Below are positions 1,291 through 54,571 of a stretch of DNA of 64,000 bases, piece after piece. Position 1 is the first letter of the stretch, and the number at the start of each line of letters is the position of its first letter. A program made the translations under genes and the position numbers. The stretch spans positions 124,001-188,000 of the IMG/VR virus record IMGVR_UViG_3300047548_001122; one strand, written 5' to 3'. The notes under the pieces were generated by a model that saw nothing but the letters and a program-made list of their open reading frames with translations, was not told the DNA's origin and ran no database searches.

Positions 1291-1935
1291 TTGGCTATAT
1301 ATCTTCTCGTTAAAGAACATGCTTACACAGGTTTAAAATATCTGTGTAAGCATGCTGCATCTTCTTTTTCTGAATGTGAGAAATATAAAGGTTCGGGTAA
1401 ATATTGGAAACGACATTTGAAACAGCATGGAAATCATGTAAATACTACTTGTTTGTTTGTTACTGAAAGTGAAAAAGAATTTCGTGAAGTTGCCAAAAAC
1501 TATTCTTTACAATTTAATGTGACAGAATCTAAAGAATGGGCAAATCTTTGTAATGAAGAAGGACAAGGAGGTAATACCGTTGTTGATAAAAATATTCACG
1601 GTAAAAAAACTAAACAAGGTTTACATAGACCTGAAGTTAGACAAAAACACCTTTGCCATTTAAAAACACATATAAAGAATATTCAACCTTTAGCAGCAAA
1701 AGCTGCAAAACAAAAATTGACTGGTGTTCTTAAAACGGAAGAACATAAAAATAATATGCGTGGAAAAAGACCGCATGTAAATCAAACAGGTTCAAAAAAT
1801 AATTTTGCTAAAAAAATAGAAACTCCATTTGGAATATTTGGTAGTATTCGTGAAGCTTCTCATCAAATTGAAGGACATACATATAAAATGATTTGGAATA
1901 GATTACAAAATGATAAAGAATGGAGATATATCTAA
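1291..1935 (+). CDS. Free-standing GIY-YIG (Seg-like) homing endonuclease, TTG start
   Basis: IYLLVKEH..TGLKYL, KYKGSGKYWKRHLKQHG, EWANL; basic NUMOD-like C-terminus; homologous to 8664..9251. Confidence 0.75.
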   Translation: MAIYLLVKEHAYTGLKYLCKHAASSFSECEKYKGSGKYWKRHLKQHGNHVNTTCLFVTESEKEFREVAKNYSLQFNVTESKEWANLCNEEGQGGNTVVDKNIHGKKTKQGLHRPEVRQKHLCHLKTHIKNIQPLAAKAAKQKLTGVLKTEEHKNNMRGKRPHVNQTGSKNNFAKKIETPFGIFGSIREASHQIEGHTYKMIWNRLQNDKEWRYI

Positions 1936-3596
1936 TGGCAATCCGTTTGTTTGGTTTCACTTTAGGTAAAAAGGACATTGTTCAGGTTGAAAAACCTGAG
2001 CAAGCTTCCTTTACACTCCCAACTCAGGCTTTAGATGATGGTGCCGTTACTATTACTAGTAATGCTTACTATGGCACATATGTTGATCTAGAAGGTTCAA
2101 TACGAAACGAATTAGAACTTATAACTCGTTATCGTGAAATGTCTAATCATCCAGAATTAGAAAAAGCAATTGATGAAATTGTCAACGAAGCAATTACATA
2201 TTCATCTGATAAAAAAGTTGTTGATATTAATGTAGATAAATTAAAAACAACAGATTCAATCAAGAAAAAAATAATAGAAGAATTTGATAAGGTATTAAAC
2301 CTTCTAAACTTTTCTAATTTAGCTTCTGATCTATTCAAAAGATGGTACATCGATGGTAGGATGTACTATCACATTATAGTCAATGAAAAGAATCCTAAAG
2401 AAGGTATTCAAGAATTACGTTATATCGACCCAAGAAAAATTAGAAAAGTTCGTGAAGTAAAAACTGGTAGAGATCCAAAAACTGGAGCAACAATAATTTT
2501 ATCTACTGCCGAATATTATGTTTATAATGATAAAGGTACTACCACTCAAAACTACACTGCATCAACAAGTCCCGGTTTAAGAATATCTACAGATTCAATT
2601 ATCAACATCAATTCTGGTATAATGGATGCAAAAAATACTTTTGTAATTTCATTTTTACACAAAGTAATTAAACCATTAAATCAACTTCGAATGATTGAAG
2701 ATGCTGTAGTTATTTACCGCATTTCTAGAGCACCAGAACGTAGAATTTTTTACATCGACGTTGGCAATTTACCAAAAGGTAAAGCTGAACAATATCTACG
2801 TGATGTTATGGTTAAGTATCGTAATAAAATGGTTTATGATGCTTCGACAGGTGAATTGCGTGATGATCGTAAACACATGTCGATGTTAGAAGATTTCTGG
2901 TTACCTCGCCGTGAAGGTGGTAAAGGAACAGAAATTACTACATTGCCAGCAGGTCAAAATTTAGGTGAGTTGGAAGATGTTAAGTATTTCCAAAAGAAAC
3001 TTCTCAATTCTTTAAATGTACCTCTTTCAAGATTAGATGAACAATCTGGCGGCGGCTTTGCTGGTTTAGGAAGAAGTCAAGAAATTACCCGTGACGAATT
3101 AAAATTTGCAAAATTTATACACAGACTTCGCAATAAATTTTCACAAATATTCACTGATGCCTTAGGATTACAATTAGTATTAAAAGGCATTTGTACATCC
3201 GAGGAATGGAAAGAATTTAAAGAGTTAATTATCTACGACTTTAAGAAAGATAATAACTTTACTGAGTTAAGAGAAGCTGAACTCTTACAAAACAGATTAC
3301 AAATGGTTGGCATGATCGATCCTTATATTGGCAAATATTTTTCACATGAATTTGTGAAAAAGAAAATTCTGCAAATGACGGATGAAGAAATTGATGAGAT
3401 GCAAAAACAAATGGATCAAGAAGATGAACAAGGTTTAGGTGGACCAACAATGGGTCAAGAACAACAAGAACCACCGGTTTCGCCCGATGAATATCCTCCT
3501 GTAGATAATACTGTGGATGATAGAAACTCCGAATCACCAACTCCTGAGTTGGATGCTGAAACGGATAGGTATTCATCAATACTAAATAGACGATAA
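1935..3596 (+). CDS. gp20: Portal vertex protein
   Basis: MAIRLFGF start (TAATG overlap), WYIDGR, NQLRMIEDAVVIYRISRAPERRIFYIDVGNLPKGKAEQY, MLEDFWLPRREGGKGTEITTLP. Confidence 0.98.
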   Translation: MAIRLFGFTLGKKDIVQVEKPEQASFTLPTQALDDGAVTITSNAYYGTYVDLEGSIRNELELITRYREMSNHPELEKAIDEIVNEAITYSSDKKVVDINVDKLKTTDSIKKKIIEEFDKVLNLLNFSNLASDLFKRWYIDGRMYYHIIVNEKNPKEGIQELRYIDPRKIRKVREVKTGRDPKTGATIILSTAEYYVYNDKGTTTQNYTASTSPGLRISTDSIININSGIMDAKNTFVISFLHKVIKPLNQLRMIEDAVVIYRISRAPERRIFYIDVGNLPKGKAEQYLRDVMVKYRNKMVYDASTGELRDDRKHMSMLEDFWLPRREGGKGTEITTLPAGQNLGELEDVKYFQKKLLNSLNVPLSRLDEQSGGGFAGLGRSQEITRDELKFAKFIHRLRNKFSQIFTDALGLQLVLKGICTSEEWKEFKELIIYDFKKDNNFTELREAELLQNRLQMVGMIDPYIGKYFSHEFVKKKILQMTDEEIDEMQKQMDQEDEQGLGGPTMGQEQQEPPVSPDEYPPVDNTVDDRNSESPTPELDAETDRYSSILNRR

Positions 3597-3805: not shown

Positions 3806-4617
3806 AATCTTTAAACGAGTTTAAAAACTTAGTAGAAGAAGAAAAATCAGACTATTCAAAGTTTGATATTTTAGTTCGAGCTGGATTAGCAAATAAAGCT
3901 CAACTACAAAGAATACATCGCATTTTAGATAAGATGCAGGATGATCGTCCTCAGTTTAATAATGCCGATAAAATGATTCTTCAAAATTTGTTTAATAAAA
4001 TGGTAGATTTAATTACCACCAATAAACAAATATTTCAAAGAACAAGGCAAGCTGTTCGTGAAGAAACTGAAGAAATTAATGAAAGTGTAATAGATACTTC
4101 TGATTATAAAATAGGTCCTTCTGGTAGAAAAATAAGAGCTCATCGTATTAAAGTTGGTGATACGGAAGAAAAAGAAGAAGTAAAAGAAGAAACTATTATT
4201 GAAGCAGATTCTAAATCTTCAACAGAGGATCCTCCTGTTGTGTTGATGTTGAAAAGAAAAGCAATTCGAATTTATCCAGATAAAACAAAAGTTGCACTTT
4301 ACTACAGTTCTAAATTAGATAAACACTTTACTGTACCTTATGGTGCAGGTGTTGAATCTGCAATACAGTCTGAAGAAGTTCAATTAGAAGAAGCTGTTAT
4401 GGATTCATTACATAAAATTGTTGCGGGTAAACAAGCACAGTCGGTTAAATTTGCCAATGGTCAAACAAGAAAAGTTGACCACTATACAGCGTCAGCTATT
4501 ACGCAAGTACACAAAGCTGTGAATGATGAAAATAAAAAGAAGTTAGCAGATATGGTACATAAATCACCTGCACACTTTGAAAAAGTTGCAGCATTTGCCT
4601 TCAGTAAAACAAAATGA
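3802..4617 (+). CDS. Putative prohead core/internal head protein
   Basis: In head operon; MKSLNEFKNLVEE N-terminus and internal EEVQLEE / EEINE / TIIE sites resembling gp21 cleavage sites. Confidence 0.6.
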   Translation: MKSLNEFKNLVEEEKSDYSKFDILVRAGLANKAQLQRIHRILDKMQDDRPQFNNADKMILQNLFNKMVDLITTNKQIFQRTRQAVREETEEINESVIDTSDYKIGPSGRKIRAHRIKVGDTEEKEEVKEETIIEADSKSSTEDPPVVLMLKRKAIRIYPDKTKVALYYSSKLDKHFTVPYGAGVESAIQSEEVQLEEAVMDSLHKIVAGKQAQSVKFANGQTRKVDHYTASAITQVHKAVNDENKKKLADMVHKSPAHFEKVAAFAFSKTK

Positions 4618-5060
4618 AATTAATAAATTTAATTTTAGAAGGCAAAGTTATTGAAGCAAGAGAGTGTTTCGAAAACTTAATGCTTCAAAAAATAGAAGAA
4701 AAATTAAAAGAAGAAAAAGAAACAATTAAAGAATTGTTTTTTGAAGATGAAGATTTAGTCGAAGCTGTAAAAAGAAGAAACCCAAACATTATACGTATGG
4801 GTAGAGTACAAAAGATTCGCCGCAGAATACGCAGAAATGCTAAAGGTAAAATTGTTGTACAAAAAAATGTAAAACGTTCTGGTATCAAAGGTTACAGAAT
4901 GTCTGGCACTACTGTAAAAAGAATACCAGCTGTAGAAAGAATTAGAAAAGCACGTTTATTAAAACGTTCTTGGAAAACAACTAGAAGAGCTAAATTACGC
5001 CGTACGTTATTGAAAAGAAAAATGTCAATGCGTAGGCGTGCATCGATAGGATTAAGATAA
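4614..5060 (+). CDS. gp68: Prohead core protein (gp68-like)
   Basis: Very basic C-terminus ending KRKMSMRRRASIGL as in gp68 family; upstream of gp21. Confidence 0.75.
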   Translation: MKLINLILEGKVIEARECFENLMLQKIEEKLKEEKETIKELFFEDEDLVEAVKRRNPNIIRMGRVQKIRRRIRRNAKGKIVVQKNVKRSGIKGYRMSGTTVKRIPAVERIRKARLLKRSWKTTRRAKLRRTLLKRKMSMRRRASIGLR

Positions 5061-5434: not shown

Positions 5435-6085
5435 ATGAAATTAATTAGAGAAGCCGTAGAAAATGTAAAGTACATCAGTGAAGCCACAGAAAATGGCAAG
5501 AAAAAACTTTACATTGAAGGTACATTTTTAGTTGGTAATGCTGTTAATAAAAATAACAGAATGTATATGATGGATACTCTCCGTAATGAAGTCGAAAGAT
5601 ATAATCAAGACTTTATATCTCAAAATAGAGCTCTAGGAGAATTAGGCCATCCAGATACACCAACAATAAACTTAGAGAGAGTTAGTCATAAGATCGTTTC
5701 TCTTGTAGAAGATGGCAATACTTTTTATGGTAAAGCTTTGATCTTAGATACTCCTTACGGACAAATAGTAAAAAACTTTATTGAAAACGATGTTACTTGT
5801 GGTGTTTCTTCGAGAGCTTTAGGTTCATTAGTTCAAACCAAAGAAGGTTACAATTTGGTTCAAGATGATCTTAGACTTGCAACGGCAGCTGATATTGTTG
5901 CAGACCCTTCTGCGCCAGGTGCTTTCGTCAACGGTATTATGGAAAATAAAGAGTGGATGTTTGTTGATGGAAAGTTCATGGAAAAACAATTTGATGAAGC
6001 CAAAAAACAGATAAAACAAGCCTCAAGAAAAGATATCGAAAAAGTTGCATTAAAACTATTTGAAAATTATATTAGAAAACTTTAA
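5435..6085 (+). CDS. gp21: Prohead protease
   Basis: NKNNRMY, ALGELGHP, GVSSRALGSL, ADIVADPSAPGAFVNGIME. Confidence 0.97.
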   Translation: MKLIREAVENVKYISEATENGKKKLYIEGTFLVGNAVNKNNRMYMMDTLRNEVERYNQDFISQNRALGELGHPDTPTINLERVSHKIVSLVEDGNTFYGKALILDTPYGQIVKNFIENDVTCGVSSRALGSLVQTKEGYNLVQDDLRLATAADIVADPSAPGAFVNGIMENKEWMFVDGKFMEKQFDEAKKQIKQASRKDIEKVALKLFENYIRKL

Positions 6086-6088
6086 ATT

Positions 6089-6096
6089 TATAAATA
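6089..6096 (+). promoter_or_regulatory. T4-type late promoter TATAAATA (gp22-gp23)
   Basis: Exact consensus between gp21 stop and gp22 RBS. Confidence 0.85.
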
Positions 6097-6118: not shown

Positions 6119-7195
6119 ATGGCATCAAACAAACTTATGGAAGCGGCTGCTGAAATTCTTGCGAATAGCAAGAAATCTGCATCAGCTATGCCTCCACAAA
6201 AATTAGATGGTGAAGTGCAAGACCTTGGCGGTCCTACTCCACAGAACGCTAAACCAGATGATAATTCACATAAAATTCATGCTGGTGAAAAAGCGCCTGA
6301 CAATTCTGCAAAGAATAAGAGTACGATTTCTACTAAGCCTTCTGACGCTTCCCCAGATACTCAAAACAAAGCTGGTAAAGCTATGAAAGAGGAAGAAGAA
6401 GTTTCTCAAGATGAAGTTATTGTTGAAGATTCTGAAGAAGAAGTAGTAAGCCTCAAAGAAAAAGTAAAAGAAGATATCAACGCATTATTTGCTGACGATG
6501 AAACTATTTCCGAGGACTTCAAATCTAAAGCAACCACAATTTTTGAAGCTCGTGTCTTAGATCGCGTTTCACAAATTGAAGAAGAAATGGAAGTTAAGTA
6601 TGCAGGTATGTTAGAAGAAGCTGTTGATTCTATCAAAGCAGACTTAACAGAAAAGGTAGATGATTACCTTAACTACGTAGTTGAACAGTGGATGGAAGAA
6701 AATCAAATTGCTATCCAATCTGGCCTACGTTCAGAAATTACTGAAGAATTCATTGTTGGTTTACGTAACCTATTTGCTGAACATTATATTGATGTTCCAG
6801 AAGATAAGGTTGATTTGGTTGACGAACTTGCTGGTAAAGTTGAAGAACTTGAAGATCAGTTAGACGAAGAAATCAAAACTAACATTGAATACAGAAAAGC
6901 AATTCTTGAATCTGTAAAAAGAGAAACAGTTTATGAAGTTTGTAAGGGACTTACCGAAACTCAAGTTGAAAAAATGAAATCACTCGCAGAGAGTGTAGAT
7001 TTTTCCACAGAGGAAGAATTAGTAGAAAAACTTGAGACAATTCGTGAAAACTATTTCCCATCAAATTTCAAAAAAGCTGATGAGACTCAATTACACGAGC
7101 AAGTAACTGACGATGCAGATGAAAAGAAACAAAAGGCATCTTTTGATCCAATCATCAATGCTGTCGTTCAATCGATTTCTAAAACAAAAATTTAA
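6119..7195 (+). CDS. gp22: Prohead core scaffolding protein
   Basis: Acidic coiled coil, FKSKATTIFEA, KVDDYLNYVVEQWMEEN, KLETIRENYF; between gp21 and gp23. Confidence 0.93.
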   Translation: MASNKLMEAAAEILANSKKSASAMPPQKLDGEVQDLGGPTPQNAKPDDNSHKIHAGEKAPDNSAKNKSTISTKPSDASPDTQNKAGKAMKEEEEVSQDEVIVEDSEEEVVSLKEKVKEDINALFADDETISEDFKSKATTIFEARVLDRVSQIEEEMEVKYAGMLEEAVDSIKADLTEKVDDYLNYVVEQWMEENQIAIQSGLRSEITEEFIVGLRNLFAEHYIDVPEDKVDLVDELAGKVEELEDQLDEEIKTNIEYRKAILESVKRETVYEVCKGLTETQVEKMKSLAESVDFSTEEELVEKLETIRENYFPSNFKKADETQLHEQVTDDADEKKQKASFDPIINAVVQSISKTKI

Positions 7196-7213: not shown

Positions 7214-8554
7214 ATGTATTTAACGGAAGACCTACAAAAGAAATGGGAAGCAGTGTTGGATCACCCAGCTCTACCTGCTATTAAAGACCCATATCGTAAA
7301 GCAGTTACCGCTCTTGTTCTTGAGAACCAAGCACAAGAAATGGTAAAAGCTGGCGGCAACGTACAGCAGCTTACAGAAGCAACACCAACTAACGCAGCTG
7401 GTACAGGTGGTTTCGGTGGCGCCGCTACTGCAACTGGTCCTGTTGCTGGTTTCGACCCAATCCTAATCAGTTTGGTTCGTCGTTCATTACCTAACCTTAT
7501 TGCTTATGATATCTGCGGCGTTCAGCCAATGACTGGTCCTACTGGACTTATCTTCGCAATGAGAACTATGTATGGTACTAACCGTGTTCCAGGTTCTGGC
7601 ACTGAAGCTTTCTACAACGAAGCAAACAGCGCATGGACTGGTACAGGTTCACACGATGCTATTTCTCTTGCTGCTAATACAGCATTAGGTAATGGTAACG
7701 TATTTACAAGCGGTATGGCAACTGGTTCTGCTCTTGCAACAGCTTCTGCTGAAGATTTAACTTTTAACGAAATGGGTTTCTCAATCGAGAAAGTATCTGT
7801 TACTGCTAAGACCCGTGCTCTAAAAGCAGAATACACAATGGAATTAGCACAAGACTTGAAAGCAGTTCATGGTCTTGACGCTGAAACCGAATTAGCAAAT
7901 ATTCTTTCAACAGAAATTCTTGCTGAAATCAACCGTGAAGTTGTTCGTACAGTTTACGCAACTGCTAAGGTTGGCGCTCAAGTTGGTACAACTACTGCTG
8001 GTACTTTTGACCTTGACACCGATTCTAACGGTCGTTGGATGGTTGAAAAGATCAAAGGTCTTGCTTTCCAAGTTGAACGTGAAGCTAACACCATTGCTAA
8101 GACAACTCGTCGTGGCAAAGGTAACATCATGATCTGCTCATCAGATGTTGCTTCAGCTCTTGCAATGGCTGGTATTCTTGACTACAACTCAGCTCTACAA
8201 GGTCAAGTTAATCTAACCGTTGACGATACTGGTAATACTTACGCAGGTACTATCTTCGGTCGTATCAAAGTTTACATCGATCCATATTTCCCAACCGGCG
8301 CAACTTCTGAGTTTGCAGTTGTTGGTTATAAGGGTGCTAACGCTTATGACGCAGGTCTATTCTACTGCCCATACGTTCCTCTACAAATGGTTCGTGCTGT
8401 TGACACTGGTAACTTCCAGCCAAAGATTGGCTTCAAGACTCGTTACGGTCTAGTTGCTAACCCATTCGCTGAAGGTGCTACACAAGGTTCTGGTGCTCTA
8501 ACTGCTAAGACTAACTTGTACTATCGTGCATTTAAGATAGCGAATCTAATGTGA
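7214..8554 (+). CDS. gp23: Major capsid protein
   Basis: GVQPMTGPTGLIFAMR, VTAKTRALKAEYTMELAQDLKAVHGLDAETELANILSTEI, DAGLFYCPYVPL, FQPKIGFKTRYG. Confidence 0.99.
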   Translation: MYLTEDLQKKWEAVLDHPALPAIKDPYRKAVTALVLENQAQEMVKAGGNVQQLTEATPTNAAGTGGFGGAATATGPVAGFDPILISLVRRSLPNLIAYDICGVQPMTGPTGLIFAMRTMYGTNRVPGSGTEAFYNEANSAWTGTGSHDAISLAANTALGNGNVFTSGMATGSALATASAEDLTFNEMGFSIEKVSVTAKTRALKAEYTMELAQDLKAVHGLDAETELANILSTEILAEINREVVRTVYATAKVGAQVGTTTAGTFDLDTDSNGRWMVEKIKGLAFQVEREANTIAKTTRRGKGNIMICSSDVASALAMAGILDYNSALQGQVNLTVDDTGNTYAGTIFGRIKVYIDPYFPTGATSEFAVVGYKGANAYDAGLFYCPYVPLQMVRAVDTGNFQPKIGFKTRYGLVANPFAEGATQGSGALTAKTNLYYRAFKIANLM

Positions 8555-8629: not shown

Positions 8630-8637
8630 TATAAATA
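8630..8637 (+). promoter_or_regulatory. Late promoter TATAAATA for endonuclease/gp3
   Basis: Exact consensus immediately after the terminator. Confidence 0.8.
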
Positions 8638-8663: not shown

Positions 8664-9251
8664 ATGATAACTCTATACATAAAAACTCACAAAAAGACAG
8701 GTCTTAAATATTTTGGAAAAACTACAAAAAAAGACCCACACAAATATACTGGATCAGGTAAATACTGGTTAAGACATTTAAAAACTCATGGTAATGATGT
8801 TTATACCGAAATAGTAGGAACATTTGAAAGTTTAAAAGAATGTACAGAATTTGCAATAAATTTTTCTAGACTACACAATATAGTCGAATCTACTGAATGG
8901 GCAAATCTTAGAATGGAAAATGGAACTGACGGTGCTCCTGTAGGAAATTGTTTTTCTACTGAAACAATTAAAAAAATGAGTGAATCTAAAAAAGGAAAAA
9001 GACCTAGAGAATATTATGTAGAGATTGCTAAGAAAAATGTTGGAAGAAAACAAACAGATTATCAAAAACAAAGAGCAAGAGAAACTATGGAGTCAGCGTG
9101 GGTTGTCACTTCACCAAATGGTGTATCGATGAACATTGTTAATTTAACTAAATTTTGTCGTGAAAATAATTTAGATCAAGGAAATATGGTCAAAGTATCT
9201 AAAGGAATAATAAAAAAACACAAAGGATGGACTTGTTATAAAGTCTCCTAA
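8664..9251 (+). CDS. Free-standing GIY-YIG (Seg-like) homing endonuclease
   Basis: TLYIKTHKKTGLKYFGKT, KYTGSGKYWLRHLKTHG, EWANL, NUMOD3-like ETIKKMSESKKGK, C-terminal NLTKFCRENNL..KHKGW module. Confidence 0.82.
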   Translation: MITLYIKTHKKTGLKYFGKTTKKDPHKYTGSGKYWLRHLKTHGNDVYTEIVGTFESLKECTEFAINFSRLHNIVESTEWANLRMENGTDGAPVGNCFSTETIKKMSESKKGKRPREYYVEIAKKNVGRKQTDYQKQRARETMESAWVVTSPNGVSMNIVNLTKFCRENNLDQGNMVKVSKGIIKKHKGWTCYKVS

Positions 9252-39319: not shown

Positions 39320-40549
39320 ATGAAATTTTTAGACTTTTTAGTAGAAGCCAAAAATGAAGGCGCAAATCTACACCTAGAACATCTAGAAGATAATATATTT
39401 AATTTTGGTGTAAATGGTACTCGACAATCAATTGATTTTTTAAGATCATTAAGAGATATGTTAGCAGGTCATTCACAATCAAAAGTAAATATTACAACAA
39501 AATGGGATGGAGCTCCAGCTGTTATATGTGGAATAAATCCTGAAAACGGAAAGTTTTTTGTTGGAACAAAATCTGTTTTCAACAAAGATGGTAAATTAAA
39601 TTACACCGATGATGATATTGATAAGAATCATCCTGGTGGGGGATTAAATGAGAAATTAAAAATAGCATTGGCCTTTTTACCAAAACTTGGCATCAAAGGT
39701 ATATTACAAGGTGATTTGTTATTTACCAAAGGTGATATACAATCAGAAACAATTGACGGACAAAAATATATAAAGTTTCAACCAAATACTATTGTGTATG
39801 CGGTGCCAACCGATTCAGTTATGGCTAAAAAAATGTTAGCCTCTCAAATGGGAATAGTTTTTCATACTTCTTATTCAGGAAGAACGATAGATACATTGAA
39901 AGCCTCCTTCAATATTGACATTGGAAATTTAACACAAACTAAAGACGTTTGGTTCCGAGATGCTTCTTTTGTTGATGCGTCTGGTACTGCAACATTCACC
40001 GATAAAGAAACTCAAGCAATAACCTCTCTATTATCTCAAGCAGGTAGAGTTTTTCAAACCATAAATCCTGTCGTGTTAAATAGAATATCCTCTGGAATAT
40101 TTAAAGAACAAATTAAGACATTCAATAATACAAAGATTAGATCAGGACAAAAAATAACAAATACTGGCCAACATGTTTCAGAATTAATTAAATATATTGA
40201 AGATAAACTAAACAAAGAAATACTTGTTGCAAAAAAAGAAGATACAAAGAAGAAAAGAATTGCCGAAAAGAATGAAGTGATGAGGTTCTATAGAGGAAGT
40301 GCCAATCAATTAAAATCTGTTTTTGATTTGATGAACTTAATAGTTGATGCTAAGTTAATGATAATAAGAAAATTGGAATCAATCAAATCTTCAGTAGATA
40401 CCTTTGTTAGAACAGAAGATGGTTATAGAGTTACTGGTCCAGAAGGGTTTGTGGCAGTAGATAGAATAAGTGGTGGTGCATTGAAGTTAGTTGATCGACT
40501 AGAATTTAGTCAGACCAACTTTAATGCCGCAAAAAATTGGAGCAAATAA
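39320..40549 (+). CDS. Polynucleotide ligase-like nucleotidyltransferase (DUF6267-like), putative internal protein
   Basis: TKWDG (motif I), QGDLLF (III), PEGFV (IV), KLV (V); MKFLDFLVE N-terminus. Confidence 0.6.
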   Translation: MKFLDFLVEAKNEGANLHLEHLEDNIFNFGVNGTRQSIDFLRSLRDMLAGHSQSKVNITTKWDGAPAVICGINPENGKFFVGTKSVFNKDGKLNYTDDDIDKNHPGGGLNEKLKIALAFLPKLGIKGILQGDLLFTKGDIQSETIDGQKYIKFQPNTIVYAVPTDSVMAKKMLASQMGIVFHTSYSGRTIDTLKASFNIDIGNLTQTKDVWFRDASFVDASGTATFTDKETQAITSLLSQAGRVFQTINPVVLNRISSGIFKEQIKTFNNTKIRSGQKITNTGQHVSELIKYIEDKLNKEILVAKKEDTKKKRIAEKNEVMRFYRGSANQLKSVFDLMNLIVDAKLMIIRKLESIKSSVDTFVRTEDGYRVTGPEGFVAVDRISGGALKLVDRLEFSQTNFNAAKNWSK

Positions 40550-40822: not shown

Positions 40823-41212
40823 ATGGCATATTCAACTCAAGTATTAGATCATTACGAAAATCCTAGAAACGTAGGTAAATTTGATATAGGTGATGAAAGT
40901 GTTGGCACAGGATTAGTAGGTGCTCCAGCTTGTGGTGACGTTTTGAAATTGCAGATAAAAGTAGAAGATAATATTATCACTGATGCGAAATTTAAAACAT
41001 ATGGTTGCGGTAGTGCTATTGCTTCGTCATCATTAGTAACTGAATGGGTCAAAGGAAAAACACTTGAAGAAGCGGGTGCAATTAAGAACACTGAAATTGC
41101 AGAAGAGTTAGCTCTACCACCAGTAAAGATACATTGTTCAATCTTAGCTGAAGATGCTATTAAAGCAGCAATCAAAGACTATCAAGATAAAAACTTAACA
41201 AAGGCTGCATAA
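40823..41212 (+). CDS. iscU: Fe-S cluster scaffold IscU
   Basis: DHYENPRNVG, GAPACGDV, FKTYGCGSAIASSS, LPPVKIHCS (three Cys + His). Confidence 0.97.
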   Translation: MAYSTQVLDHYENPRNVGKFDIGDESVGTGLVGAPACGDVLKLQIKVEDNIITDAKFKTYGCGSAIASSSLVTEWVKGKTLEEAGAIKNTEIAEELALPPVKIHCSILAEDAIKAAIKDYQDKNLTKAA

Positions 41213-41503: not shown

Positions 41504-42337
41504 ATGAAAGATTTGATTATAGGATGTTCCACCAACTACGATTGGTCTAAGTTAAAATATTGGATCAATTCTATCAATGCATCAGGATTTGAAGGTGATA
41601 AAATCCTGATTCTAATGAACTGTGATGCTGAAACAGTTAAAAAAATTACAGAAGCAGGTTTCGGTGTAATTGGATTCAATCAAGATGAACAAGGTAATTT
41701 GAGTTATAGTTCTTCAATGCCTGTCCACACCGAAAGATTTTTACACATCTACAATTATTTAAAAGACAGAGACTATCGTTATGTAATCACAACCGATGTT
41801 AAAGATGTTGTCTTTCAAAAAAATCCTATCGAATATCTTGAAGCGGAATGTATTTCTAAAAATCTAATTTTTGCTTCCGAAAGTATCAAGTATAAAGACG
41901 AACCTTGGGGTGACCAAAACCTAAAAGAAACTTTTGGTCCATACATCTACGAACAGTTTAAGAACAATGAAATCTTCAACGTTGGTGTTTTGGCTGGTCA
42001 CGGCTACGCTATTCGTGATTTAGCTTTGAACATTTTTGTCGCTAGTTTAAATCGTCCTATTCCAATTTGTGACCAATCTACGTTTAATTTCCTCATTAGT
42101 CAAAACCCTTACACCTCATTGAGTAAGTATTGTTTCTCTGAAGATGGTTGGGCTGCACAACTAGGAACAACAGGTGATCCATCAAAATCTGCACAATTCG
42201 ATCCTTTGTTACTCGAAGAGAAACCAAAATTTGATGGTAATATTGTAACTACATCAAAAGGTAAAGAATTCTATATTGTACACCAATATGATAGAGTTCC
42301 AGAAATGAAAAAGGTCATTGAGGAAAAATTTGCATGA
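41504..42337 (+). CDS. GT-A-like glycosyltransferase
   Basis: YVITTDVKDVVFQ (DxxD), FNVGVLAG, DQSTFN, HQYDR. Confidence 0.6.
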   Translation: MKDLIIGCSTNYDWSKLKYWINSINASGFEGDKILILMNCDAETVKKITEAGFGVIGFNQDEQGNLSYSSSMPVHTERFLHIYNYLKDRDYRYVITTDVKDVVFQKNPIEYLEAECISKNLIFASESIKYKDEPWGDQNLKETFGPYIYEQFKNNEIFNVGVLAGHGYAIRDLALNIFVASLNRPIPICDQSTFNFLISQNPYTSLSKYCFSEDGWAAQLGTTGDPSKSAQFDPLLLEEKPKFDGNIVTTSKGKEFYIVHQYDRVPEMKKVIEEKFA

Positions 42338-43290
42338 AACGTCTATTGTTTGTAGTTCATCGTTATGCTCCTTATCCTGGCGGTTCTGAAAATTATGTCA
42401 GAGATATGGCCGAAGAATGTGTTCGGAGAGGACATGATGTTTCTGTTTTCACTGGCGAACACAAAGGCGATTTGAATGGAGTAAAAGTTACATCAGACGT
42501 AAATATTCTAGGTCAAAAGTTTGATCTCATTATCGTTCATGGCGGCGACGTTGGCTTACAAAATTTAGTATTGATGAACGCAGAAAGAATACCTTCACCA
42601 ATACTATTCATGATTATAAAACCATCCGAAAGTCCTGTTTATATTCATGCGATGAACACCGTAAAATACCTAGGATGTTCTGCACCAGAGGATTATGAAT
42701 TATTGAAAAAACATAATCACATGAATAAGTGTGTTAGAGTTATTCATGGTATAGATGAAAAGATATCAGTTGGTATGACAGGTTTTAGAGAGAAGTATGG
42801 TATAGAAACAAAATATATGTTTTTATCGTGTGGAGGTTTCTGGCCAAATAAAGCAATGAATGAACTCGCACAAATATTCAATGATATTGGAAGAGATGAT
42901 GCTACGCTAGTATTAACAGGTTATGATAACAGACATAACATTCGTCCAATTGATACGAAATATGTTAAGACATTTATGATAGAAGATAGAGAAGATGTTT
43001 TGTCGGCCATTCGTGATGCAGATTTATACATTATGCATTCCTTCAGTGAAGGGTTTGGTTTAGTTCTTCTAGAGTCTATGTTAAATAAAACTCCTTGGGC
43101 TTCTAGAAAAATTGCTGGTGCTAATTTAATGAGTGAGTTTGGATTTACATACGAAAATGACCATCAACTTAGAGAATATATTTTAGATTTTGATGGTAAT
43201 AAAGATGCACAAATAGAAAATGCATATGAGTATGTAACATTAAATCATATGATAAAAAATACAGTTGATGATATTATGAGGTTAGTATGA
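42334..43290 (+). CDS. GT4 (GT-B) glycosyltransferase
   Basis: YPGGSE, ADLYIMHSFSEGFGLVLLESM (EX7E). Confidence 0.85.
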   Translation: MKRLLFVVHRYAPYPGGSENYVRDMAEECVRRGHDVSVFTGEHKGDLNGVKVTSDVNILGQKFDLIIVHGGDVGLQNLVLMNAERIPSPILFMIIKPSESPVYIHAMNTVKYLGCSAPEDYELLKKHNHMNKCVRVIHGIDEKISVGMTGFREKYGIETKYMFLSCGGFWPNKAMNELAQIFNDIGRDDATLVLTGYDNRHNIRPIDTKYVKTFMIEDREDVLSAIRDADLYIMHSFSEGFGLVLLESMLNKTPWASRKIAGANLMSEFGFTYENDHQLREYILDFDGNKDAQIENAYEYVTLNHMIKNTVDDIMRLV

Positions 43291-43922
43291 ATTTTACTTT
43301 TGGTATTCTTACAAAATACGATGATGAAGAAAAACTAAAAGAAGTTATAGACTCGATACACAATCTAAACATTCCGGAAAATGGTGGTGATTATCAAGTT
43401 TTGGTAATAGGCGAAAAGAAAGTAGAAGGATCAAAATATGAGAGGTACATTTATTTTGATGAAACTGCCAAACCAGCCTGGATAACCAAAAAGAAAAATT
43501 TATTGGCTCGTGCCGCAAATTTTCAAAACATTGTTTTAATGCACGATTACTTTGTTTTTGATAAAGATTGGTATAAAAACTTTTTAGAGTTTGGAAATGA
43601 TTGGGACATTTGTTCTTGTCCACAATATCTAATAAACGGTAAACGACATTTTACCGATTGGGTTTGTTGGGATTCACCTTTATTTCCGAGATATACTTCA
43701 TTACATTATGATGATTGGTCACATGTGAATTACATGTATCAATCTGGCGGTTTCGTTGTTGCAAAAACACAGTTGATTATTGATAATCCATTCAATGAAC
43801 AATTAGGTTGGGGTCAAGCTGACGATGTTGAATGGTCTCTCCGAGTGAGACATAGATACAAGTATGTTTGTAATGGAAAAAGTATAGTGAGACATAATAA
43901 GGTACATCGTGATGCGAAATAA
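43287..43922 (+). CDS. GT-A-like glycosyltransferase
   Basis: ITKKKN..A, IVLMHDY, WGQADDVEWS. Confidence 0.65.
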   Translation: MNFTFGILTKYDDEEKLKEVIDSIHNLNIPENGGDYQVLVIGEKKVEGSKYERYIYFDETAKPAWITKKKNLLARAANFQNIVLMHDYFVFDKDWYKNFLEFGNDWDICSCPQYLINGKRHFTDWVCWDSPLFPRYTSLHYDDWSHVNYMYQSGGFVVAKTQLIIDNPFNEQLGWGQADDVEWSLRVRHRYKYVCNGKSIVRHNKVHRDAK

Positions 43923-45282
43923 ATTAATTATATTTGACTTAGATGGTGTTTTGATTGAATCTAGAGAATTGCATTATCACGCTCTTAATGATGCATTAAG
44001 AAAAGTCGATGAACGTTATGTAATTGACCGAGAAGAACACCTCAGTGTTTATGATGGTTTAAACACCACTAGAAAACTTGAAATGTTGACCGAAAGAAAA
44101 GGTCTGCCTACGAGTTTCTACGATCAAGTATGGCAAGATAAACAGTCAGCAACTTTTGAATTAATCAAACAGTTTCCAAAAAATCCAACCTTAATAGAAT
44201 TTTTCAGTAGTCTAAAATCGCAAGGTATAAAAGTTGCCGTTGCAAGTAACTCTATACGTGAAACGGTAAAGCTTGCTTTAATATCTATAGGTGTGTTAGA
44301 ATATGTAGATTACTTTGTAAGTAATGAGGATGTTAGGAGACCCAAGCCATATCCAGAGATGTATTGGCAATGCATGACCGTTTTAAATGCATTGCCAAAA
44401 ACTACAGTTATCTTTGAAGATAGTCACATTGGTAGAGAGGGTGCTTTAAATTCTGGAGCTCACTTAATTCCATTAAAAGATTCTTTTGATTTGACCAAAG
44501 ACAAAATAGACGATGCGCTTGATATATTAAATGGAATTAAAAAAACAAATATACCATGGAGAAATAAAAAAATGAATGTATTGATACCAATGGCAGGCGC
44601 AGGTAGTAGATTTGCTGCAGCAGGTTATACTTTTCCAAAACCTCTAATCGAAGTTCGTGGAAAACCAATGATTCAGGTTGTTGTGGAAAATCTTAATGTT
44701 GAAGCGCACTTCATTTTCATTGTACAAAAAGAACACTACGAAAAGTATAATCTAAAACAATTGTTGAATCTTATTGCTCCAGGTTGCGACATAATCCAGG
44801 TTGACGGTATAACAGAAGGTGCTGCGTGTACAACATTACTCGCAAAAGAACTTATTAATAACGGTGAACCTCTATTGATGGCAAACTCGGATCAATTTGT
44901 TGAGTGGAATTCCAATGAGTGTTTATATGCATTTACTGCTGATACTATCGATGGTGGTATAGTTACTTTTGAAGCCACGCATCCAAAGTGGTCTTTTGCT
45001 AAATTGGATGAAAATGGTTTTGTTTCAGAAGTTGCGGAGAAAAAACCAATCTCGAATATTGCAACGGTAGGAATATATTATTGGAAACAAGGTAGCGATT
45101 ATGTTAAGTATGCTGAACAGATGATACAGAAAAACATTCGTGTCAATAATGAATTCTATGTTTGTCCAGTATTTAATGAAGCAATTGCCGATGGTAAAAA
45201 GATAAGAACCAAACATATCGAAAGAATGTGGGGAATAGGAACACCAGAAGATTTAAATTACTTTTTGGAGAACCATAAATGA
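43909..45282 (+). CDS. HAD phosphatase fused to sugar nucleotidyltransferase
   Basis: FDLDGVL, VASNS, KPYPE, FEDS; then IPMAGAGSRF...PKPLI, ANSDQ, GTPEDL. Confidence 0.88.
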   Translation: MMRNKLIIFDLDGVLIESRELHYHALNDALRKVDERYVIDREEHLSVYDGLNTTRKLEMLTERKGLPTSFYDQVWQDKQSATFELIKQFPKNPTLIEFFSSLKSQGIKVAVASNSIRETVKLALISIGVLEYVDYFVSNEDVRRPKPYPEMYWQCMTVLNALPKTTVIFEDSHIGREGALNSGAHLIPLKDSFDLTKDKIDDALDILNGIKKTNIPWRNKKMNVLIPMAGAGSRFAAAGYTFPKPLIEVRGKPMIQVVVENLNVEAHFIFIVQKEHYEKYNLKQLLNLIAPGCDIIQVDGITEGAACTTLLAKELINNGEPLLMANSDQFVEWNSNECLYAFTADTIDGGIVTFEATHPKWSFAKLDENGFVSEVAEKKPISNIATVGIYYWKQGSDYVKYAEQMIQKNIRVNNEFYVCPVFNEAIADGKKIRTKHIERMWGIGTPEDLNYFLENHK

Positions 45283-46671: not shown

Positions 46672-47126
46672 TTTCACATAGAGCTAATTTAAACGGTCCA
46701 GACCCATCAATCGAAAATAAACCTGAATCAATTGTTCACGCTATCGATCAGGGATTTTCGGTTGAGGTTGATCTTCGAATGAAAGATCAAAAACTATATT
46801 TTGGACATGATGAAGCTCAATATGAAACTGATATTAATTTTTTAAAGAAGTACAAACAATATCTATGGATTCATTGTAAAGAAATGGAAACCATGGAGTT
46901 TTGTCTTGAACAGGCTCTACACTGTTTCTGGCATAACGATGATGATTATACACTGACAAATTACAGATATGTCTGGGCATACCCCGGAAAAGAACCTGTC
47001 GGCAAACTAACGATAATGGTGATGCCAGAAAGGCACTGGAGTCCAGAAGAAACCCTATCAAAAAAACCATTTGGAGTATGCACAGACTACCCTTATGCGT
47101 ATCAAGATATTATAAATAAGAGATAA
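46662..47126 (+). CDS. PLC/GDPD-like phosphodiesterase
   Basis: ISHRAN..G, EN, VEVDL, FGHD, WIHCK, GVCTDY. Confidence 0.7.
   Translation: MFIISHRANLNGPDPSIENKPESIVHAIDQGFSVEVDLRMKDQKLYFGHDEAQYETDINFLKKYKQYLWIHCKEMETMEFCLEQALHCFWHNDDDYTLTNYRYVWAYPGKEPVGKLTIMVMPERHWSPEETLSKKPFGVCTDYPYAYQDIINKR
47111..47118 (+). promoter_or_regulatory. Late promoter TATAAATA for the internal-protein cluster
   Basis: Exact consensus 34 nt upstream of ATG 47152. Confidence 0.8.
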
Positions 47127-50420: not shown

Positions 50421-51719
50421 ATGGCACAGTTTAGAACCGACAAAAACATTATCGATTCGGGTCAAGTATTTACTCGATATGAGATAATGATGTTATCTGA
50501 TAGGCTGACACCATCTGGTACAGCCACAGATGCGTTCGGTCGTTTACGTGTTGCTGAACCACATACTCTTTTTGATTCACAACATCAAGACGTTGAAAAT
50601 GATAAATGGGATACACTCATTACAGGTTCGGGCACCAAAACACATTTACCAAATGAATCTGTAATTGCTTTAGAAATTGGTACTGCAAATAACGATGGTA
50701 TTATTCGTGAAACACTAAGAACAATGCCATACCAACCAGGCAAATCATTGTTGATTATGAGCACATTTGCTATGGGACAACCAAAAGCGAACGTTGTTCA
50801 GAGAGTAGGATATTATGGAGCAAATAACGGAATTTATTTTGAAAACGATTCTGGAAATAACTATGTTGTATTAAGAAGTTCTGTTACAGGAAATGTTGTA
50901 GAAACTAGAGTTGCACAAACAAATTGGAATGTGGATAAATTTGATGGTACGGGATATTCGAGTCAGGGAACAGGACCAGAACACGTTGATGGAATAAATG
51001 TAAACAAATCAAATCTTTTTTGGATTGATATTGAATGGCTAGGCGTTGGTGATGTTCGATGTGGTTTTTTGAATGACGGCCTATTAAAAACTGCACACAT
51101 ATTTCATAACGACAATAAAAACAATACAACTTATATGCGTAGTGCAATTCAACCATTGCGATATGAAATATTTAACAAAGGTGTTACAACATCAAATACG
51201 CTGATGCGTCAAATTTGTTCTACAGTCATATCCGAAGGTGGTTATACACAAATTAATCAATCAAGGTCAGCATCAAATCCTTTGGCTGGTAAAAACTTAA
51301 CTGTTAGTATTAATAACCCAATGGTAAGCCTTCGGTTAAAAAATGGTAGAACAAATGCTGTCGTTGTACCTGTTGCAATTGATATGTATGGATTACAAGC
51401 AACAGCATTTAAATATAGAGTGTATGAGAATGTCACAAGTTTAACCGGTCCATCATGGGTTACAACCGACGCCGCAAGTGCAGTTGAGTATGATATATCG
51501 GCAACGGCAATGACTGGTGGAACTTTACTTAAAGAAGGTATTTTCAAAGGATTAGAAGTTGCAAAAGAAGTTAATTTGTTACAACTATTAGATGGTGTTA
51601 TACAACTAACAAGAAAAATAAATGCAAACACTGGCGACATATTCACGGTTGCAATAGAACCAACAACAAACAACGATGATGCTATCGTAGCATTATCATG
51701 GCAAGAACACATTAATTAA
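50421..51719 (+). CDS. Putative virion structural protein (beta-rich)
   Basis: DAFGRLRV..PHTLFDS, YQPGKS, WLGVG.VRCGF; late cluster. Confidence 0.55.
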   Translation: MAQFRTDKNIIDSGQVFTRYEIMMLSDRLTPSGTATDAFGRLRVAEPHTLFDSQHQDVENDKWDTLITGSGTKTHLPNESVIALEIGTANNDGIIRETLRTMPYQPGKSLLIMSTFAMGQPKANVVQRVGYYGANNGIYFENDSGNNYVVLRSSVTGNVVETRVAQTNWNVDKFDGTGYSSQGTGPEHVDGINVNKSNLFWIDIEWLGVGDVRCGFLNDGLLKTAHIFHNDNKNNTTYMRSAIQPLRYEIFNKGVTTSNTLMRQICSTVISEGGYTQINQSRSASNPLAGKNLTVSINNPMVSLRLKNGRTNAVVVPVAIDMYGLQATAFKYRVYENVTSLTGPSWVTTDAASAVEYDISATAMTGGTLLKEGIFKGLEVAKEVNLLQLLDGVIQLTRKINANTGDIFTVAIEPTTNNDDAIVALSWQEHIN

Positions 51720-51734
51720 AAATAGGAGACTCAA

Positions 51735-53141
51735 ATGTTTCAAGACAAACTAACAAGAGAAATTGCTGCAGCTGCTGCACAAATCAAAACAGAACCACCA
51801 AAGAATGAAGTTAATTCTGAGTCTGTTGAGGGTGCAGTCGTTTCTGTTATGACGAATGAAGAACTAAAAGGCAATCAACACAAGATTGATGCTAACAAAA
51901 ACGGCAAAGTTGATGCACATGACTTTAAACTTCTTCGTGCCAAGAAAGGTAAAACGGTAGAAGAAGGCATTAAAGGTGCTGGTATAGGTGCTGCTGTAGG
52001 TTCTGTTGCTGGTGGACCGATTGGTGCAGCAGTTGGTGGTGCTTTGGGGCATGTAGCAGGTGAAGTTCTATCAAGTGCTAAGAATAAAACAAAAGCTATG
52101 TATCGTATTGCAAAAGGTCCTTCGATGGCCGACAGCAAAATAAAGAAAGAAGAAGTTGAAGAACTCGATGAATTGTTTGGAAAAGGTAAATTACCAGCAA
52201 TTGCAGCATATCACAAAGAAAAAGGTGCTGAAGCTAAAGGTAAGATGGAAACAATTAGAAGTGGTAACACTAAACTTCCTGTTCCAAAATCTACATCTGC
52301 TAAAATCTTTTCTAAAGATGCTGAAGCTAAATATCATTCAACTCAGGAGAAAAGAGCAAAATCTTTGATGAAAAAAGAAGAAGTTGAATCCGTTGAAGAG
52401 GGATTTGGTGATCTAGTTAAAGGTATTAAACGTGTCGTTGCCGGTAAAAAGAGTCCTAGTGCCGTAAGAGATGCACACTTAGCAAAATCTGCTTTTAGTA
52501 CAGATCCGAAAGTTAAAGAGCGTGAAGGTCGCCGTTACGATAAAGTGGATAACTTCATGATGAAAAAAGAAGAAACGGAATTGGATGAAGCCTTTCCAAC
52601 TGTAGCTGATGCTAGAAAACGTATGGCTGCAAAAGAAAGTGGTTTCGAGAAAAAGAAAATTTCTACTGGTACAGTTTACTCACGTAAGTATAAGGCAGAA
52701 CCAGAAGAGAATGATGAAGCGCCAAAGAAAAAGGCCAAGACCATGAAAGAAATGTTGAGTATCTATTCAGCAGGTGGCGCCGAAGCTTTGGTAGAAAATC
52801 TCATGATCGAAGAACCATCACAAGATGAATATAAAAAGGAAGTTGAAACTGCTCAGGCAAAAGCTGACGGTAAAATTCGTAACGATAAAGGTATAGCTAA
52901 AGCAGCATCACAGGGTGTAAAGATGGAAGAAGTTGAAATTGAAGTTCTTGATGCAGATGAAATCAATGGAGTTCAGATTGACAATATTGAAGAGCGCCAC
53001 ATGACTGATGCTGAAATGGATAAACGTGAAGAAATCGTTAAGTCAATGAAAAAAGGTATTCAAGGTTTCAAAGATCGTTATGGCGATAAAGCAAAAAATG
53101 TAATGTATGCTACTGCAACCAAATTGTCCAAAAAGGATTAA
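51735..53141 (+). CDS. Modular putative internal head protein
   Basis: Repeated KKEEVEELDE / KKEEVESVEE / KKEETELDE linkers separating basic modules. Confidence 0.6.
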   Translation: MFQDKLTREIAAAAAQIKTEPPKNEVNSESVEGAVVSVMTNEELKGNQHKIDANKNGKVDAHDFKLLRAKKGKTVEEGIKGAGIGAAVGSVAGGPIGAAVGGALGHVAGEVLSSAKNKTKAMYRIAKGPSMADSKIKKEEVEELDELFGKGKLPAIAAYHKEKGAEAKGKMETIRSGNTKLPVPKSTSAKIFSKDAEAKYHSTQEKRAKSLMKKEEVESVEEGFGDLVKGIKRVVAGKKSPSAVRDAHLAKSAFSTDPKVKEREGRRYDKVDNFMMKKEETELDEAFPTVADARKRMAAKESGFEKKKISTGTVYSRKYKAEPEENDEAPKKKAKTMKEMLSIYSAGGAEALVENLMIEEPSQDEYKKEVETAQAKADGKIRNDKGIAKAASQGVKMEEVEIEVLDADEINGVQIDNIEERHMTDAEMDKREEIVKSMKKGIQGFKDRYGDKAKNVMYATATKLSKKD

Positions 53142-53143
53142 AC

Positions 53144-54571
53144 ATGAAGAAGATGTCTGACGTTTTCAAATCCATTCGTTTTGCCAAAATGGACCCAAAA
53201 CACGATAAGCCCGAAATTGGTGGTTCGAAAGATGACGAGGAACATTATACTGTTGGTGAAAAGGAATATGAACAACAGGTAAAACATGTAAAAAAGCGTG
53301 CTATGCAAGAAGAAAAGAAAGACAAATATGATGAAGGTGAATATGACCGAGAAGGCGATATGGCTAAATCTGATCTTCGTTCTATCATTGCAAATGCAAA
53401 AAGATTGCATGATATGATCGAAGATTCGGCTAACCTTCCTGAATGGGTGCAGTCTAAAATTACTGTTGCTGAAGATTATATTTCTACAGTTGCTAATTAT
53501 ATGACATCAGAAATGAGTGAAGGGGTATCTGATAAGTTGTACAAATCTCATCAAGATTTGCGTAAGAAGAGTGGGTTACCTCATCCCGATTACTACAAAG
53601 CATTAGGTAAATCTTATGACATTGAAGATGATAAAGAACGCCTTACACATCAATCTGAATTAAAGAAAAAATATGGTGTGAAAGAAGAGGTTGAACTTGA
53701 AGAGTCCTCTAAATTTGCAAAAATTTTTGATAAGAGAGTCAAACAAAGAGAACTCAATAAATTACCTAAAGAACCAAAAGGTGAATATGAACGTAAAGTG
53801 GACAAGTATTTGAAGAAGAAATATAACAAAGAAGAAGTTGAACTTCAAGAAGGTCGTCCATCACAACGCCATCCATTAGAGGGTCATGAGTATCACAAAA
53901 AGTCTAATGAAGAATTGATTGGTATTGCTAAAGATGCACATGCGGCTGCTGAAGCAATGAAGGGTCACAGTACCAGAGCAGAAAACAAATATCGTGACCA
54001 AGCAAATGATTCTGCAACAGTACGTTATTTCCGACAAAAGAGTGGTATGCCTGACTGGTACAAAAAGAAGTATGGTCATGTCAAAGAAGGAGTAGAACTT
54101 GAAGAGGGTTTACAACAAACTCTTAGAAAAGTTGTTCCTGGTTATGCAAAGAAACAAATAAACGATAAAATGGACCGTGAAAAGTTTGGTAGAAGAGATG
54201 TGGATAAAGACGAGAATTATTATCGTTATAAAAAAGTCCTCGACAAATTAAAAAAAGAAGATGTTGAACAATTAGAAGAAAAGAATGTTCCAACTTCTCC
54301 AGAAAAATGGGCTCAAGCCAAAGCACAAGCAAAGGCCAAGTTTGACGTTTATCCTTCTGCCTATGCAAATGGTTGGGCTGCAAAGAAATATAAAGCAATG
54401 GGTGGTGGTTGGAAATCAGTCAGTGAAGAATCTATTTTAGAGTCTCGTAAGGCTGAAATTGTCAAAAAGATAGTTAAGAGTAAAAAAACTAATAGTGATG
54501 ATAAATTTGAACCTAACCCTATCATGTCGAAAGATGAAGATAGGGGCAGAGATAACATAAATAACAAGTAA
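53144..54571 (+). CDS. Modular putative internal head protein
   Basis: Repeated KEEVELEE / KEEVELQE / KEGVELEE / KEDVEQLEE linkers. Confidence 0.6.
   Translation: MKKMSDVFKSIRFAKMDPKHDKPEIGGSKDDEEHYTVGEKEYEQQVKHVKKRAMQEEKKDKYDEGEYDREGDMAKSDLRSIIANAKRLHDMIEDSANLPEWVQSKITVAEDYISTVANYMTSEMSEGVSDKLYKSHQDLRKKSGLPHPDYYKALGKSYDIEDDKERLTHQSELKKKYGVKEEVELEESSKFAKIFDKRVKQRELNKLPKEPKGEYERKVDKYLKKKYNKEEVELQEGRPSQRHPLEGHEYHKKSNEELIGIAKDAHAAAEAMKGHSTRAENKYRDQANDSATVRYFRQKSGMPDWYKKKYGHVKEGVELEEGLQQTLRKVVPGYAKKQINDKMDREKFGRRDVDKDENYYRYKKVLDKLKKEDVEQLEEKNVPTSPEKWAQAKAQAKAKFDVYPSAYANGWAAKKYKAMGGGWKSVSEESILESRKAEIVKKIVKSKKTNSDDKFEPNPIMSKDEDRGRDNINNK
54556..54563 (+). promoter_or_regulatory. Late promoter variant CATAAATA
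   Basis: One mismatch to consensus, upstream of AGGAG RBS of 54596. Confidence 0.5.

Follow-up and report, generated by a model that had tools for sequence, protein, structure and literature searches.

Why would a phage repeat one short acidic sequence between protein modules that share nothing else? The question is raised by two adjacent open reading frames (ORFs), here called A and B, found in a window of 64,000 nucleotides (nt) that covers bases 124001-188000 of the 214,237-base-pair IMG/VR virus record IMGVR_UViG_3300047548_001122 (positions below are those of the window). Both ORFs encode strings of small modules ("beads") joined by linkers of the KEEVE type. We consider it probable that A and B are polyprotein precursors of internal (ejected) proteins and that they are cut by the prohead protease. 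The phage is a T4-like myovirus of an aquatic lineage, and direct terminal repeats are noted on its record. The window has a G+C content of ~34% and carries every large ORF on the + strand; the major capsid protein is ~63% identical to capsid proteins of Kyanoviridae cyanophages.

The linkers were searched with the strict motif E[EDGT][VT]E.{0,1}[LIV].E, which occurs three times in A and four times in B (Table 1). The original prediction had counted at least seven linkers across the two genes, and this number is borne out by the seven strict copies. Shuffling of the residues of A and B yields a mean of 0.011 copies, and none of 20,000 shuffles contained more than one. In the whole genome (719 ORFs of at least 50 amino acids, aa) the motif is confined to A, B and two further ORFs, designated like other genes here by their first nucleotide, 3802 and 49893. 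The same linker had also been claimed for 3802, 47152 and 49893. This is correct for 49893 (two strict copies) and for 3802 (one strict and two related copies), whereas 47152 contains only looser acidic [LI]xE linkers.

Table 1. Positions of the head genes, the cargo cluster and the elements of A and B in the window.
Feature	Position	Strand	Remarks
Portal gene	1920-3596		
3802 protein, 271 aa	3802..4617	+	Between the portal and the prohead core/protease genes
Prohead core protein, phrog_1064	4614-5060		
gp21-type prohead core protease, Peptidase_S77, phrog_207	5435..6085	+	Proposed linker-cutting enzyme
Scaffold, phrog_237	6119-7195		
Major capsid protein	7214-8554		
T4 late-promoter consensus TATAAATA	47111..47118	+	33 nt 5' of the 47152 start codon
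47152, 914 aa	47152..49896	+	First cluster gene; leader MKFKDFLTE, cytidylyltransferase, Zeta-toxin/AAA kinase, more modules on looser acidic linkers
49893, bead protein, 175 aa	49893..50420	+	Leader MKSFTQFINE, linker, HicA toxin domain, second linker, DUF6321
phrog_1645 "virion structural protein"	50421..51719	+	Between 49893 and A; conserved in cyanomyoviruses
ORF A, 468 aa	51735..53141	+	Fixed N-terminal module (EF-hand-like loop), variable middle beads, fixed C-terminal helical hairpin
EF-hand/dockerin-like loop D-x-N-x-N-G-K-V-D-x-x-D	51888..51923	+	A residues 52-63, N-terminal module
Glycine-zipper bead of A	51966..52067	+	24.3 bits against a cut-off of 25; only in some homologues
Linker A-1, KEEVEELDE	52146..52172	+	Predicted cut after final E, aa 146
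Linker A-2, KEEVESVEE	52374..52400	+	Predicted cut after aa 222
Linker A-3, KEETELDE	52566..52589	+	Predicted cut after aa 285; AFPT starts next module
Degenerate linker in A, KMEEVEIEVLDADE	52920..52961	+	aa 396-409; without clean [LIV]xE in the usual register
ORF B, 475 aa	53144..54571	+	Four linkers, five segments
Linker B-1, KEEVELEE	53681..53704	+	Predicted cut after aa 187
Linker B-2, KEEVELQE	53828..53851	+	Predicted cut after aa 236; GRPSQRHP starts next module
Linker B-3, KEGVELEE	54083..54106	+	Predicted cut after aa 321
Linker B-4, KEDVEQLEE	54254..54280	+	Predicted cut after aa 379; KNVPT starts next module

Relatives were collected from scans of IMG/VR (~160 loci), which gave 225 unique homologues. 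They contain 424 linkers with the consensus K-K-K-K-E-E-V-E-Q-[LI]-D-E. When the anchor KEE[VTI]E alone is required, [LIVM]xE comes next, at an offset of 0 or 1, in 136 of 145 unique 12-mers; the two halves of the motif are therefore coupled. The strongest result of the analysis is the junction rule: conserved modules begin exactly after [LIVM]-x-E. This applies to the module starting with GRPSQRHP in 58 of 58 unique contexts, to the KNVPT module in 48 of 48 contexts in relatives, to the HicA module in 30 of 30 and to the AFPTVAD module in 27 of 27.

The sequence upstream of such a module need not be a linker. GRPSQRHP is preceded 49 times by an internal junction (24 times with the acidic linker motif) and nine times by an N-terminal decapeptide such as MKSFKTFIAE. 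This decapeptide resembles the capsid targeting sequence (CTS) of T4, MKTYQEFIAE, the first ten residues of which suffice for targeting to the head; residues 4 and 7 serve targeting, residues 8 and 10 serve processing, and gp21 cuts after E10 (PMC9026906). The module starting with CWPG follows a CTS-like leader in 25 contexts. The leader, with the consensus M-K-S-F-K-Q-F-[LI]-T-E, opens 163 of the 1544 unique ORFs of the loci (0.8 expected), among them some B-type homologues in relatives. In the window it is present in 49893, 47152 (one residue shorter), 3802 and the DUF6267 protein encoded at 39320. The internal linker retains the processing positions (hydrophobic residue at -3, Glu at -1) and lacks the aromatic targeting positions. 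Since leader and linker precede the same modules and end with the same residue, they represent two alternative left borders.

A hydrophobic residue at P3 together with Glu at P1 is known from the literature as the rule of T4-type prohead proteases, and such an enzyme is encoded among the head genes of the window. It matches PF03420 with 118 bits (window 5486-5944) and aligns to the T4 gp21 chain 5JBL, having His and Ser at two positions where that chain has Ala. We take these positions to be those of His85 and Ser140, the catalytic residues in T4 gp21. An L-T-E/A site is found in the capsid protein of the phage where the end of its propeptide is expected. Thus, as in a viral polyprotein, the reiterated and sequence-defined junctions match the specificity of a protease of the same virus. 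A and B would be made late, as polyprotein precursors within an internal-protein (head cargo) locus, and the gp21 homologue would cut after the final Glu of every linker during head maturation, in the way T4 gp21 removes the ten-residue CTS from the internal proteins (IPs) IPI-III. The cuts would free small proteins that stay with the DNA in the head and enter the host at infection. We infer cleavage, the packaging of A and B, injection and effector roles of the beads.

A different view is that the linkers are flexible acidic spacers which stay uncleaved, A and B being intact multi-domain (polyvalent) proteins that act either in the virion or inside the infected cell. Phages often encode polyvalent proteins with many domains, which can be delivered without being processed (PMC5512222), A and B have no targeting leader, and in the AlphaFold models the linkers appear as low-confidence or helical connectors with no special fold. 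These models have a low confidence overall (mean predicted local distance difference test, pLDDT, of 57 and 60). They contain short helical units, of which the C-terminal hairpin of A is confident, and in B the low-confidence segments 182-184, 227-242, 311-325 and 372-380 coincide with the linkers. The models fit beads on a string. Uncleaved spacers, however, leave three observations unexplained: a hydrophobic P3 and a Glu P1 that hardly vary and keep a constant distance to the start of the module, the alternative T4-CTS-like leader with the same end tripeptide and the same module start, and the limitation of the motif to four ORFs of a genome with a Glu-specific prohead protease. For these reasons we regard this view as unlikely.

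What the cuts would release can be described from the beads themselves, which are independent, mostly alpha-helical and mostly basic small modules. The internal beads comprise 49-85 aa and have an isoelectric point of 8.9-9.7 with the acidic tail and 9.7-10.2 without it, so the expected basic character was found and the expected size of 40-60 aa was not. The end segments of A and B are larger (146, 183, 187 and 96 aa); two have a near-neutral or acidic character. The variable middle of A consists of the glycine-zipper bead and at least three orphan basic beads; among the modules of B, those named B1b, B3 and B5 are widely conserved, while B2 and B4 are rare. An origin of the beads by internal duplication was considered and discarded, as self-comparison reveals the linkers only; the linker is the sole repeated element of the A/B region at the DNA or the protein level. 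The EF-hand-like loop, of the calcium-binding type, is invariant in all 42 aligned A-type proteins and is modelled with a pLDDT of 83-87. A Pfam search with single beads of A and B (E <= 1) gave only sub-threshold matches, to EF-hand/dockerin and to the glycine zipper; apart from this loop and this zipper the beads are orphans. Comparison of the B model with the PDB by Foldseek gave no match at E <= 0.001, and an ESM Atlas search with bead B3 returned just a viral hypothetical cluster and generic helical hairpins, with no functional lead. No function is claimed on the basis of fold because of the low confidence of the models.

In the relatives the beads behave as separate units. When A is aligned with eight homologues, entire beads are present or absent and a linker is kept at every joint. 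The N-terminal module and the C-terminal helical hairpin are fixed across homologues; the glycine-zipper bead occurs in four of the nine sequences, and one bead that is common among the relatives is absent from the window. The HicA bead, located here in 49893, is the second module of the B-type protein in most relatives. Cutting the homologues at their linkers yields 654 segments in ~118 clusters, 73 of them singletons, numbers which are rough as single linkage over-merged the largest families. The presence, absence and order of modules vary among the 225 unique homologues, i.e. the content is hypervariable. It had been predicted that the modules are swappable and suggested that their order be compared across relatives; the comparison shows mosaic gain and loss of independent beads and agrees with the prediction. 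Synechococcus phages also carry modules of A and B in further proteins encoded in the same region. A separate observation concerns DSL-LC04 (OR003939), a 61.5-kb phage of a non-T4 type, which has DUF6321 (94 aa) and a B5-like module (62 aa) as free-standing genes (L165:1967-2689). They are located in its head-gene block, between the capsid/cement genes and the adaptor gene; hence the same beads exist elsewhere as single small head-block genes.

A and B belong to a larger cluster. The order 47152, 49893, virion structural protein 50421, A, B, 54596, 55365 is found in dozens of loci, and the genes from 47152 through B overlap or lie at most 15 nt apart, which suggests one late transcript. The late-promoter consensus TATAAATA occurs in the window only at 6089, 8630, 28103 and 47111, always on the coding strand and before genes (7.7 copies are expected on both strands), and another copy than that of the cluster sits directly before the scaffold gene. 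This pattern fits genuine T4-type late promoters, with selection against the sequence elsewhere. Given the perfect promoter and the packed genes, the cluster is probably expressed late; scans for sigma-70 promoters and terminators between 46.5 and 58 kb gave hits at chance level only. Two cluster proteins combine at least two conflict-related domains in one polypeptide, namely 47152 (cytidylyltransferase and Zeta-toxin/AAA) and 49893 (HicA and DUF6321). No mention of DUF6321 was found in the literature.

Published proteomes connect relatives of the cluster proteins with the virion. The cytidylyltransferase T4-GC190 is a cyanophage core protein present in the virion proteomes of cyanomyoviruses (PMC3037559), and virions of S-CREM2 contain gp154 (a cytidylyltransferase), gp155, gp156 and gp160 (PMC10665884). 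According to its sequence, gp154 starts with MKNFSSFLTE, and gp160 consists of multiple modules with acidic [LIV]xE junctions, one module being common with 47152 (E = 2e-11). The two proteins gp154 and gp160 (L164:2109-6736) seem to represent the same leader-and-bead system in a cultured cyanophage for which mass spectrometry data are published. Two further proteins of the window resemble the cluster proteins. In the 3802 protein a CTS-like start (MKSLNEF..LVE) is combined with three acidic [LI]xE junctions. Its final module, residue 192 onwards, shares homology with a portion of a 172-aa protein that the Methylophilales phage Melnitz encodes in the equivalent region, before the primase gene. 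The DUF6267 protein (window 39320-40549; Pfam, 380 bits) starts with MKFLDFLVE, a CTS-like leader as in 47152, and is probably packaged into the head as well. On the simplest interpretation, the cluster from 47152 to B, probably together with 3802 and 39320, constitutes the locus of internal proteins in this lineage.

The content of the locus bears on a second alternative, in which A and B are cleaved in the prohead and their products are not injected effectors but assembly or core filler, charge-balancing peptides like the fragments of T4 gp22, gp67 and gp68. The products would be small, most beads of A and B have no recognizable enzymatic domain, and the scaffold and 3802 proteins of the phage hold similar acidic EEV..[LIV]xE stretches. 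The T4 head is reported to retain internal peptides derived from the core (Black, Showe and Steven 1994, as cited in PMC5694885). On the other hand, the same bead system includes a HicA toxin, a Zeta-type kinase, a cytidylyltransferase and a glycine zipper, which make sense as host-directed activities. Moreover, the bead content is hypervariable among close relatives, as in the T-even IP locus and unlike essential assembly parts, and A and B have no PHROG or Pfam similarity to scaffold proteins. A role as filler is therefore distinctly unlikely.

Alternatively, the linker could be kept mainly as DNA microhomology for the shuffling of cassettes, an intragenic analogue of PeSLs, its likeness to a protease site being incidental. 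Modules are indeed gained and lost at linkers, the linkers are the only direct DNA repeats of the region, their first AAA GAA GAA is nearly invariant (30 of 31 unique DNAs), and shuffling mediated by PeSLs and at the IP locus is known in T4-like phages (PMC4122927). But AAA and GAA are the preferred codons anyway. The codons for Val, Gln, Leu, Ile and the distal Glu vary synonymously at about the background level and Leu and Ile are interchanged, which means that selection acts mainly on the peptide. The junction rule is likewise a rule of amino acids and holds for divergent linkers without DNA similarity. Microhomology as the main cause is very improbable, and as a secondary benefit it is compatible with cleavage in the prohead. 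That the junctions are cut outside the head by a different protease, either of the host or another of the phage, is hardly credible: nothing specific speaks for it except that the KKEEVE half does not belong to the minimal determinant known for gp21. A scan of the cluster proteins revealed no other protease domain, T4-type prohead proteases are the enzymes that follow the rule of a hydrophobic P3 and a Glu P1, and the equivalence with the leader ties the junction to the CTS system.

Several points weigh against processing of A and B by the prohead protease and delivery of their beads. A begins with MFQDKLTRE and B with MKKMSDVFKS, neither of which is CTS-like or has a cut site in register. We know of no requirement of T4 gp21 for the upstream KKEEVE half, which could extend the recognition element, provide accessibility, mask the charge of the basic bead as a tail or be a joint for recombination. 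The bare [LIV]xE is not enriched in A and B (20 observed, 16.3 expected from shuffles), so that the signal is the extended motif. If retained, the acidic tail would cut the net charge of each bead by ~4-7 units, which weakens a pure DNA-condensing role. Between gp160 and B5 there is only a weak likeness (E = 5e-4, from one pairwise comparison). Finally, in multiple sequence alignments both borders of an indel fall within 10 aa of a linker at a frequency of 0.10-0.19 compared with 0.02-0.03 for random positions, a moderate enrichment only. This test is noisy because MAFFT handles mosaic proteins poorly, and the anchor-based junction test is preferred to it.

Processing of A and B by the prohead protease would also have consequences for their evolution. 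As every joint has the same sequence, beads could be gained, lost and exchanged among genes and phages with processing undisturbed. It is possible, though we put this forward tentatively and as doubtful, that the system is one of combinatorial internal-protein polyproteins, in which the linker is both a prohead-protease site and a universal recombination joint and the products form a reshufflable cocktail of at least ten host-directed proteins. The head would then be loaded from one late operon with a stoichiometric mixture that includes the HicA RNase, the Zeta-type kinase, the glycine-zipper peptide and many orphan beads, and a single processing signal would exist in two forms, as T4-like CTS leader and as internal linker.

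The closest known counterparts are IPI, IPII and IPIII of T4 with their CTS. In both cases a T4-like phage with a gp21-type protease encodes small, mostly basic proteins and uses a leader of ~10 residues, M-K-x-[FY]-x-x-F-[IL]-x-E, cut after Glu, which is found here on 49893, 47152 and many relatives of the same modules; the content of the T-even IP locus also varies strongly between related phages. The T4 proteins, however, are encoded by separate genes, each with its own leader, whereas here unrelated modules are joined in one ORF by a reiterated internal linker. A and B, unlike the T4 IPs, have no leader, and their sequences are not similar to those of IPI-III. Polyvalent proteins (Iyer et al. 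2017, PMC5512222) have in common with the present system many unrelated domains per polypeptide, a location beside virion genes, predicted packaging and delivery with the DNA, Zeta-toxin-like kinases and a mosaic domain content. In that paper their release is ascribed to an embedded peptidase (MPTase) or does not take place, in contrast to the release predicted here, in trans by the prohead protease; no peptidase family was detected by Pfam and PHROGs in A, B, 47152 and 49893. The beads of A and B are also much smaller (~40-80 aa) than the domains of polyvalent proteins and mostly orphan.

Other systems share single properties. The T4 prohead core proteins gp22, gp67 and gp68 would be like A and B in being multiply cut precursors with [LI]xE sites in acidic surroundings. 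They are assembly factors, however, and most of their fragments leave the head, whereas the pieces of A and B are conserved and independently mobile modules; A and B match no scaffold or core family in Pfam and PHROGs, and the true scaffold and core genes are located elsewhere in the window. The giant phages phiKZ, 201phi2-1 and SPN3US have inner-body and ejection proteins processed by a T4-related prohead protease (gp175/gp245), which recognizes three residues and cleaves behind Glu in many proteins of the head interior, in some of them at multiple sites. There the motif is [ASG]-x-E, propeptides are removed rather than arrays separated, and descriptions of a reiterated extended linker are lacking. 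PeSL promoter-terminator cassettes (PMC4122927) are similar in that a short conserved sequence flanks variable units and may act as a recombination joint, but they are intergenic regulatory DNA motifs, while the linker is found inside an ORF and is conserved at the protein level. Judged from sequence, the apparent novelty with respect to T4 IPs and polyvalent proteins is the concatenation of unrelated small modules by a reiterated linker that would be cleaved in trans. The literature searched yielded no description of such linkers, although one may exist elsewhere.

Cleavage of the linkers in the prohead, if it takes place, would extend the T4 internal-protein paradigm from leader-tagged single genes to polyprotein arrays. 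This would explain the recurrence of cytidylyltransferases and neighboring hypothetical proteins in virion proteomes of marine myoviruses. Dozens of orphan module families would become candidate injected effectors or anti-defence proteins that can be screened bead by bead. The linker would be a natural, compact and portable element for loading T4-type heads with multiple cargoes, which bears on the T4 expression-packaging-processing technology. It would also be a concrete case of a protein-level signal that sets the exchange units of modular evolution.

Some other genes of the window deserve mention. An HNH/homing endonuclease gene (window 8664-9251) is located directly 3' of the major capsid gene and is preceded by the TATAAATA late promoter at 8630. 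The ORF at window 36978-38093 matches the domain of DruA, a Druantia defence protein (E = 7e-10), which is unusual in a lytic T4-like phage. A full-length gene for the Fe-S cluster scaffold NifU_N (window 40823-41212, 176 bits) is apparently an auxiliary metabolic gene. Just 5' of the cargo cluster, at window 42334-45282, a GT4 glycosyltransferase (a weak "GT4-conflict" match) and a HAD hydrolase/nucleotidyl transferase fusion are encoded; these genes may be linked to the modification of DNA or surface sugars.

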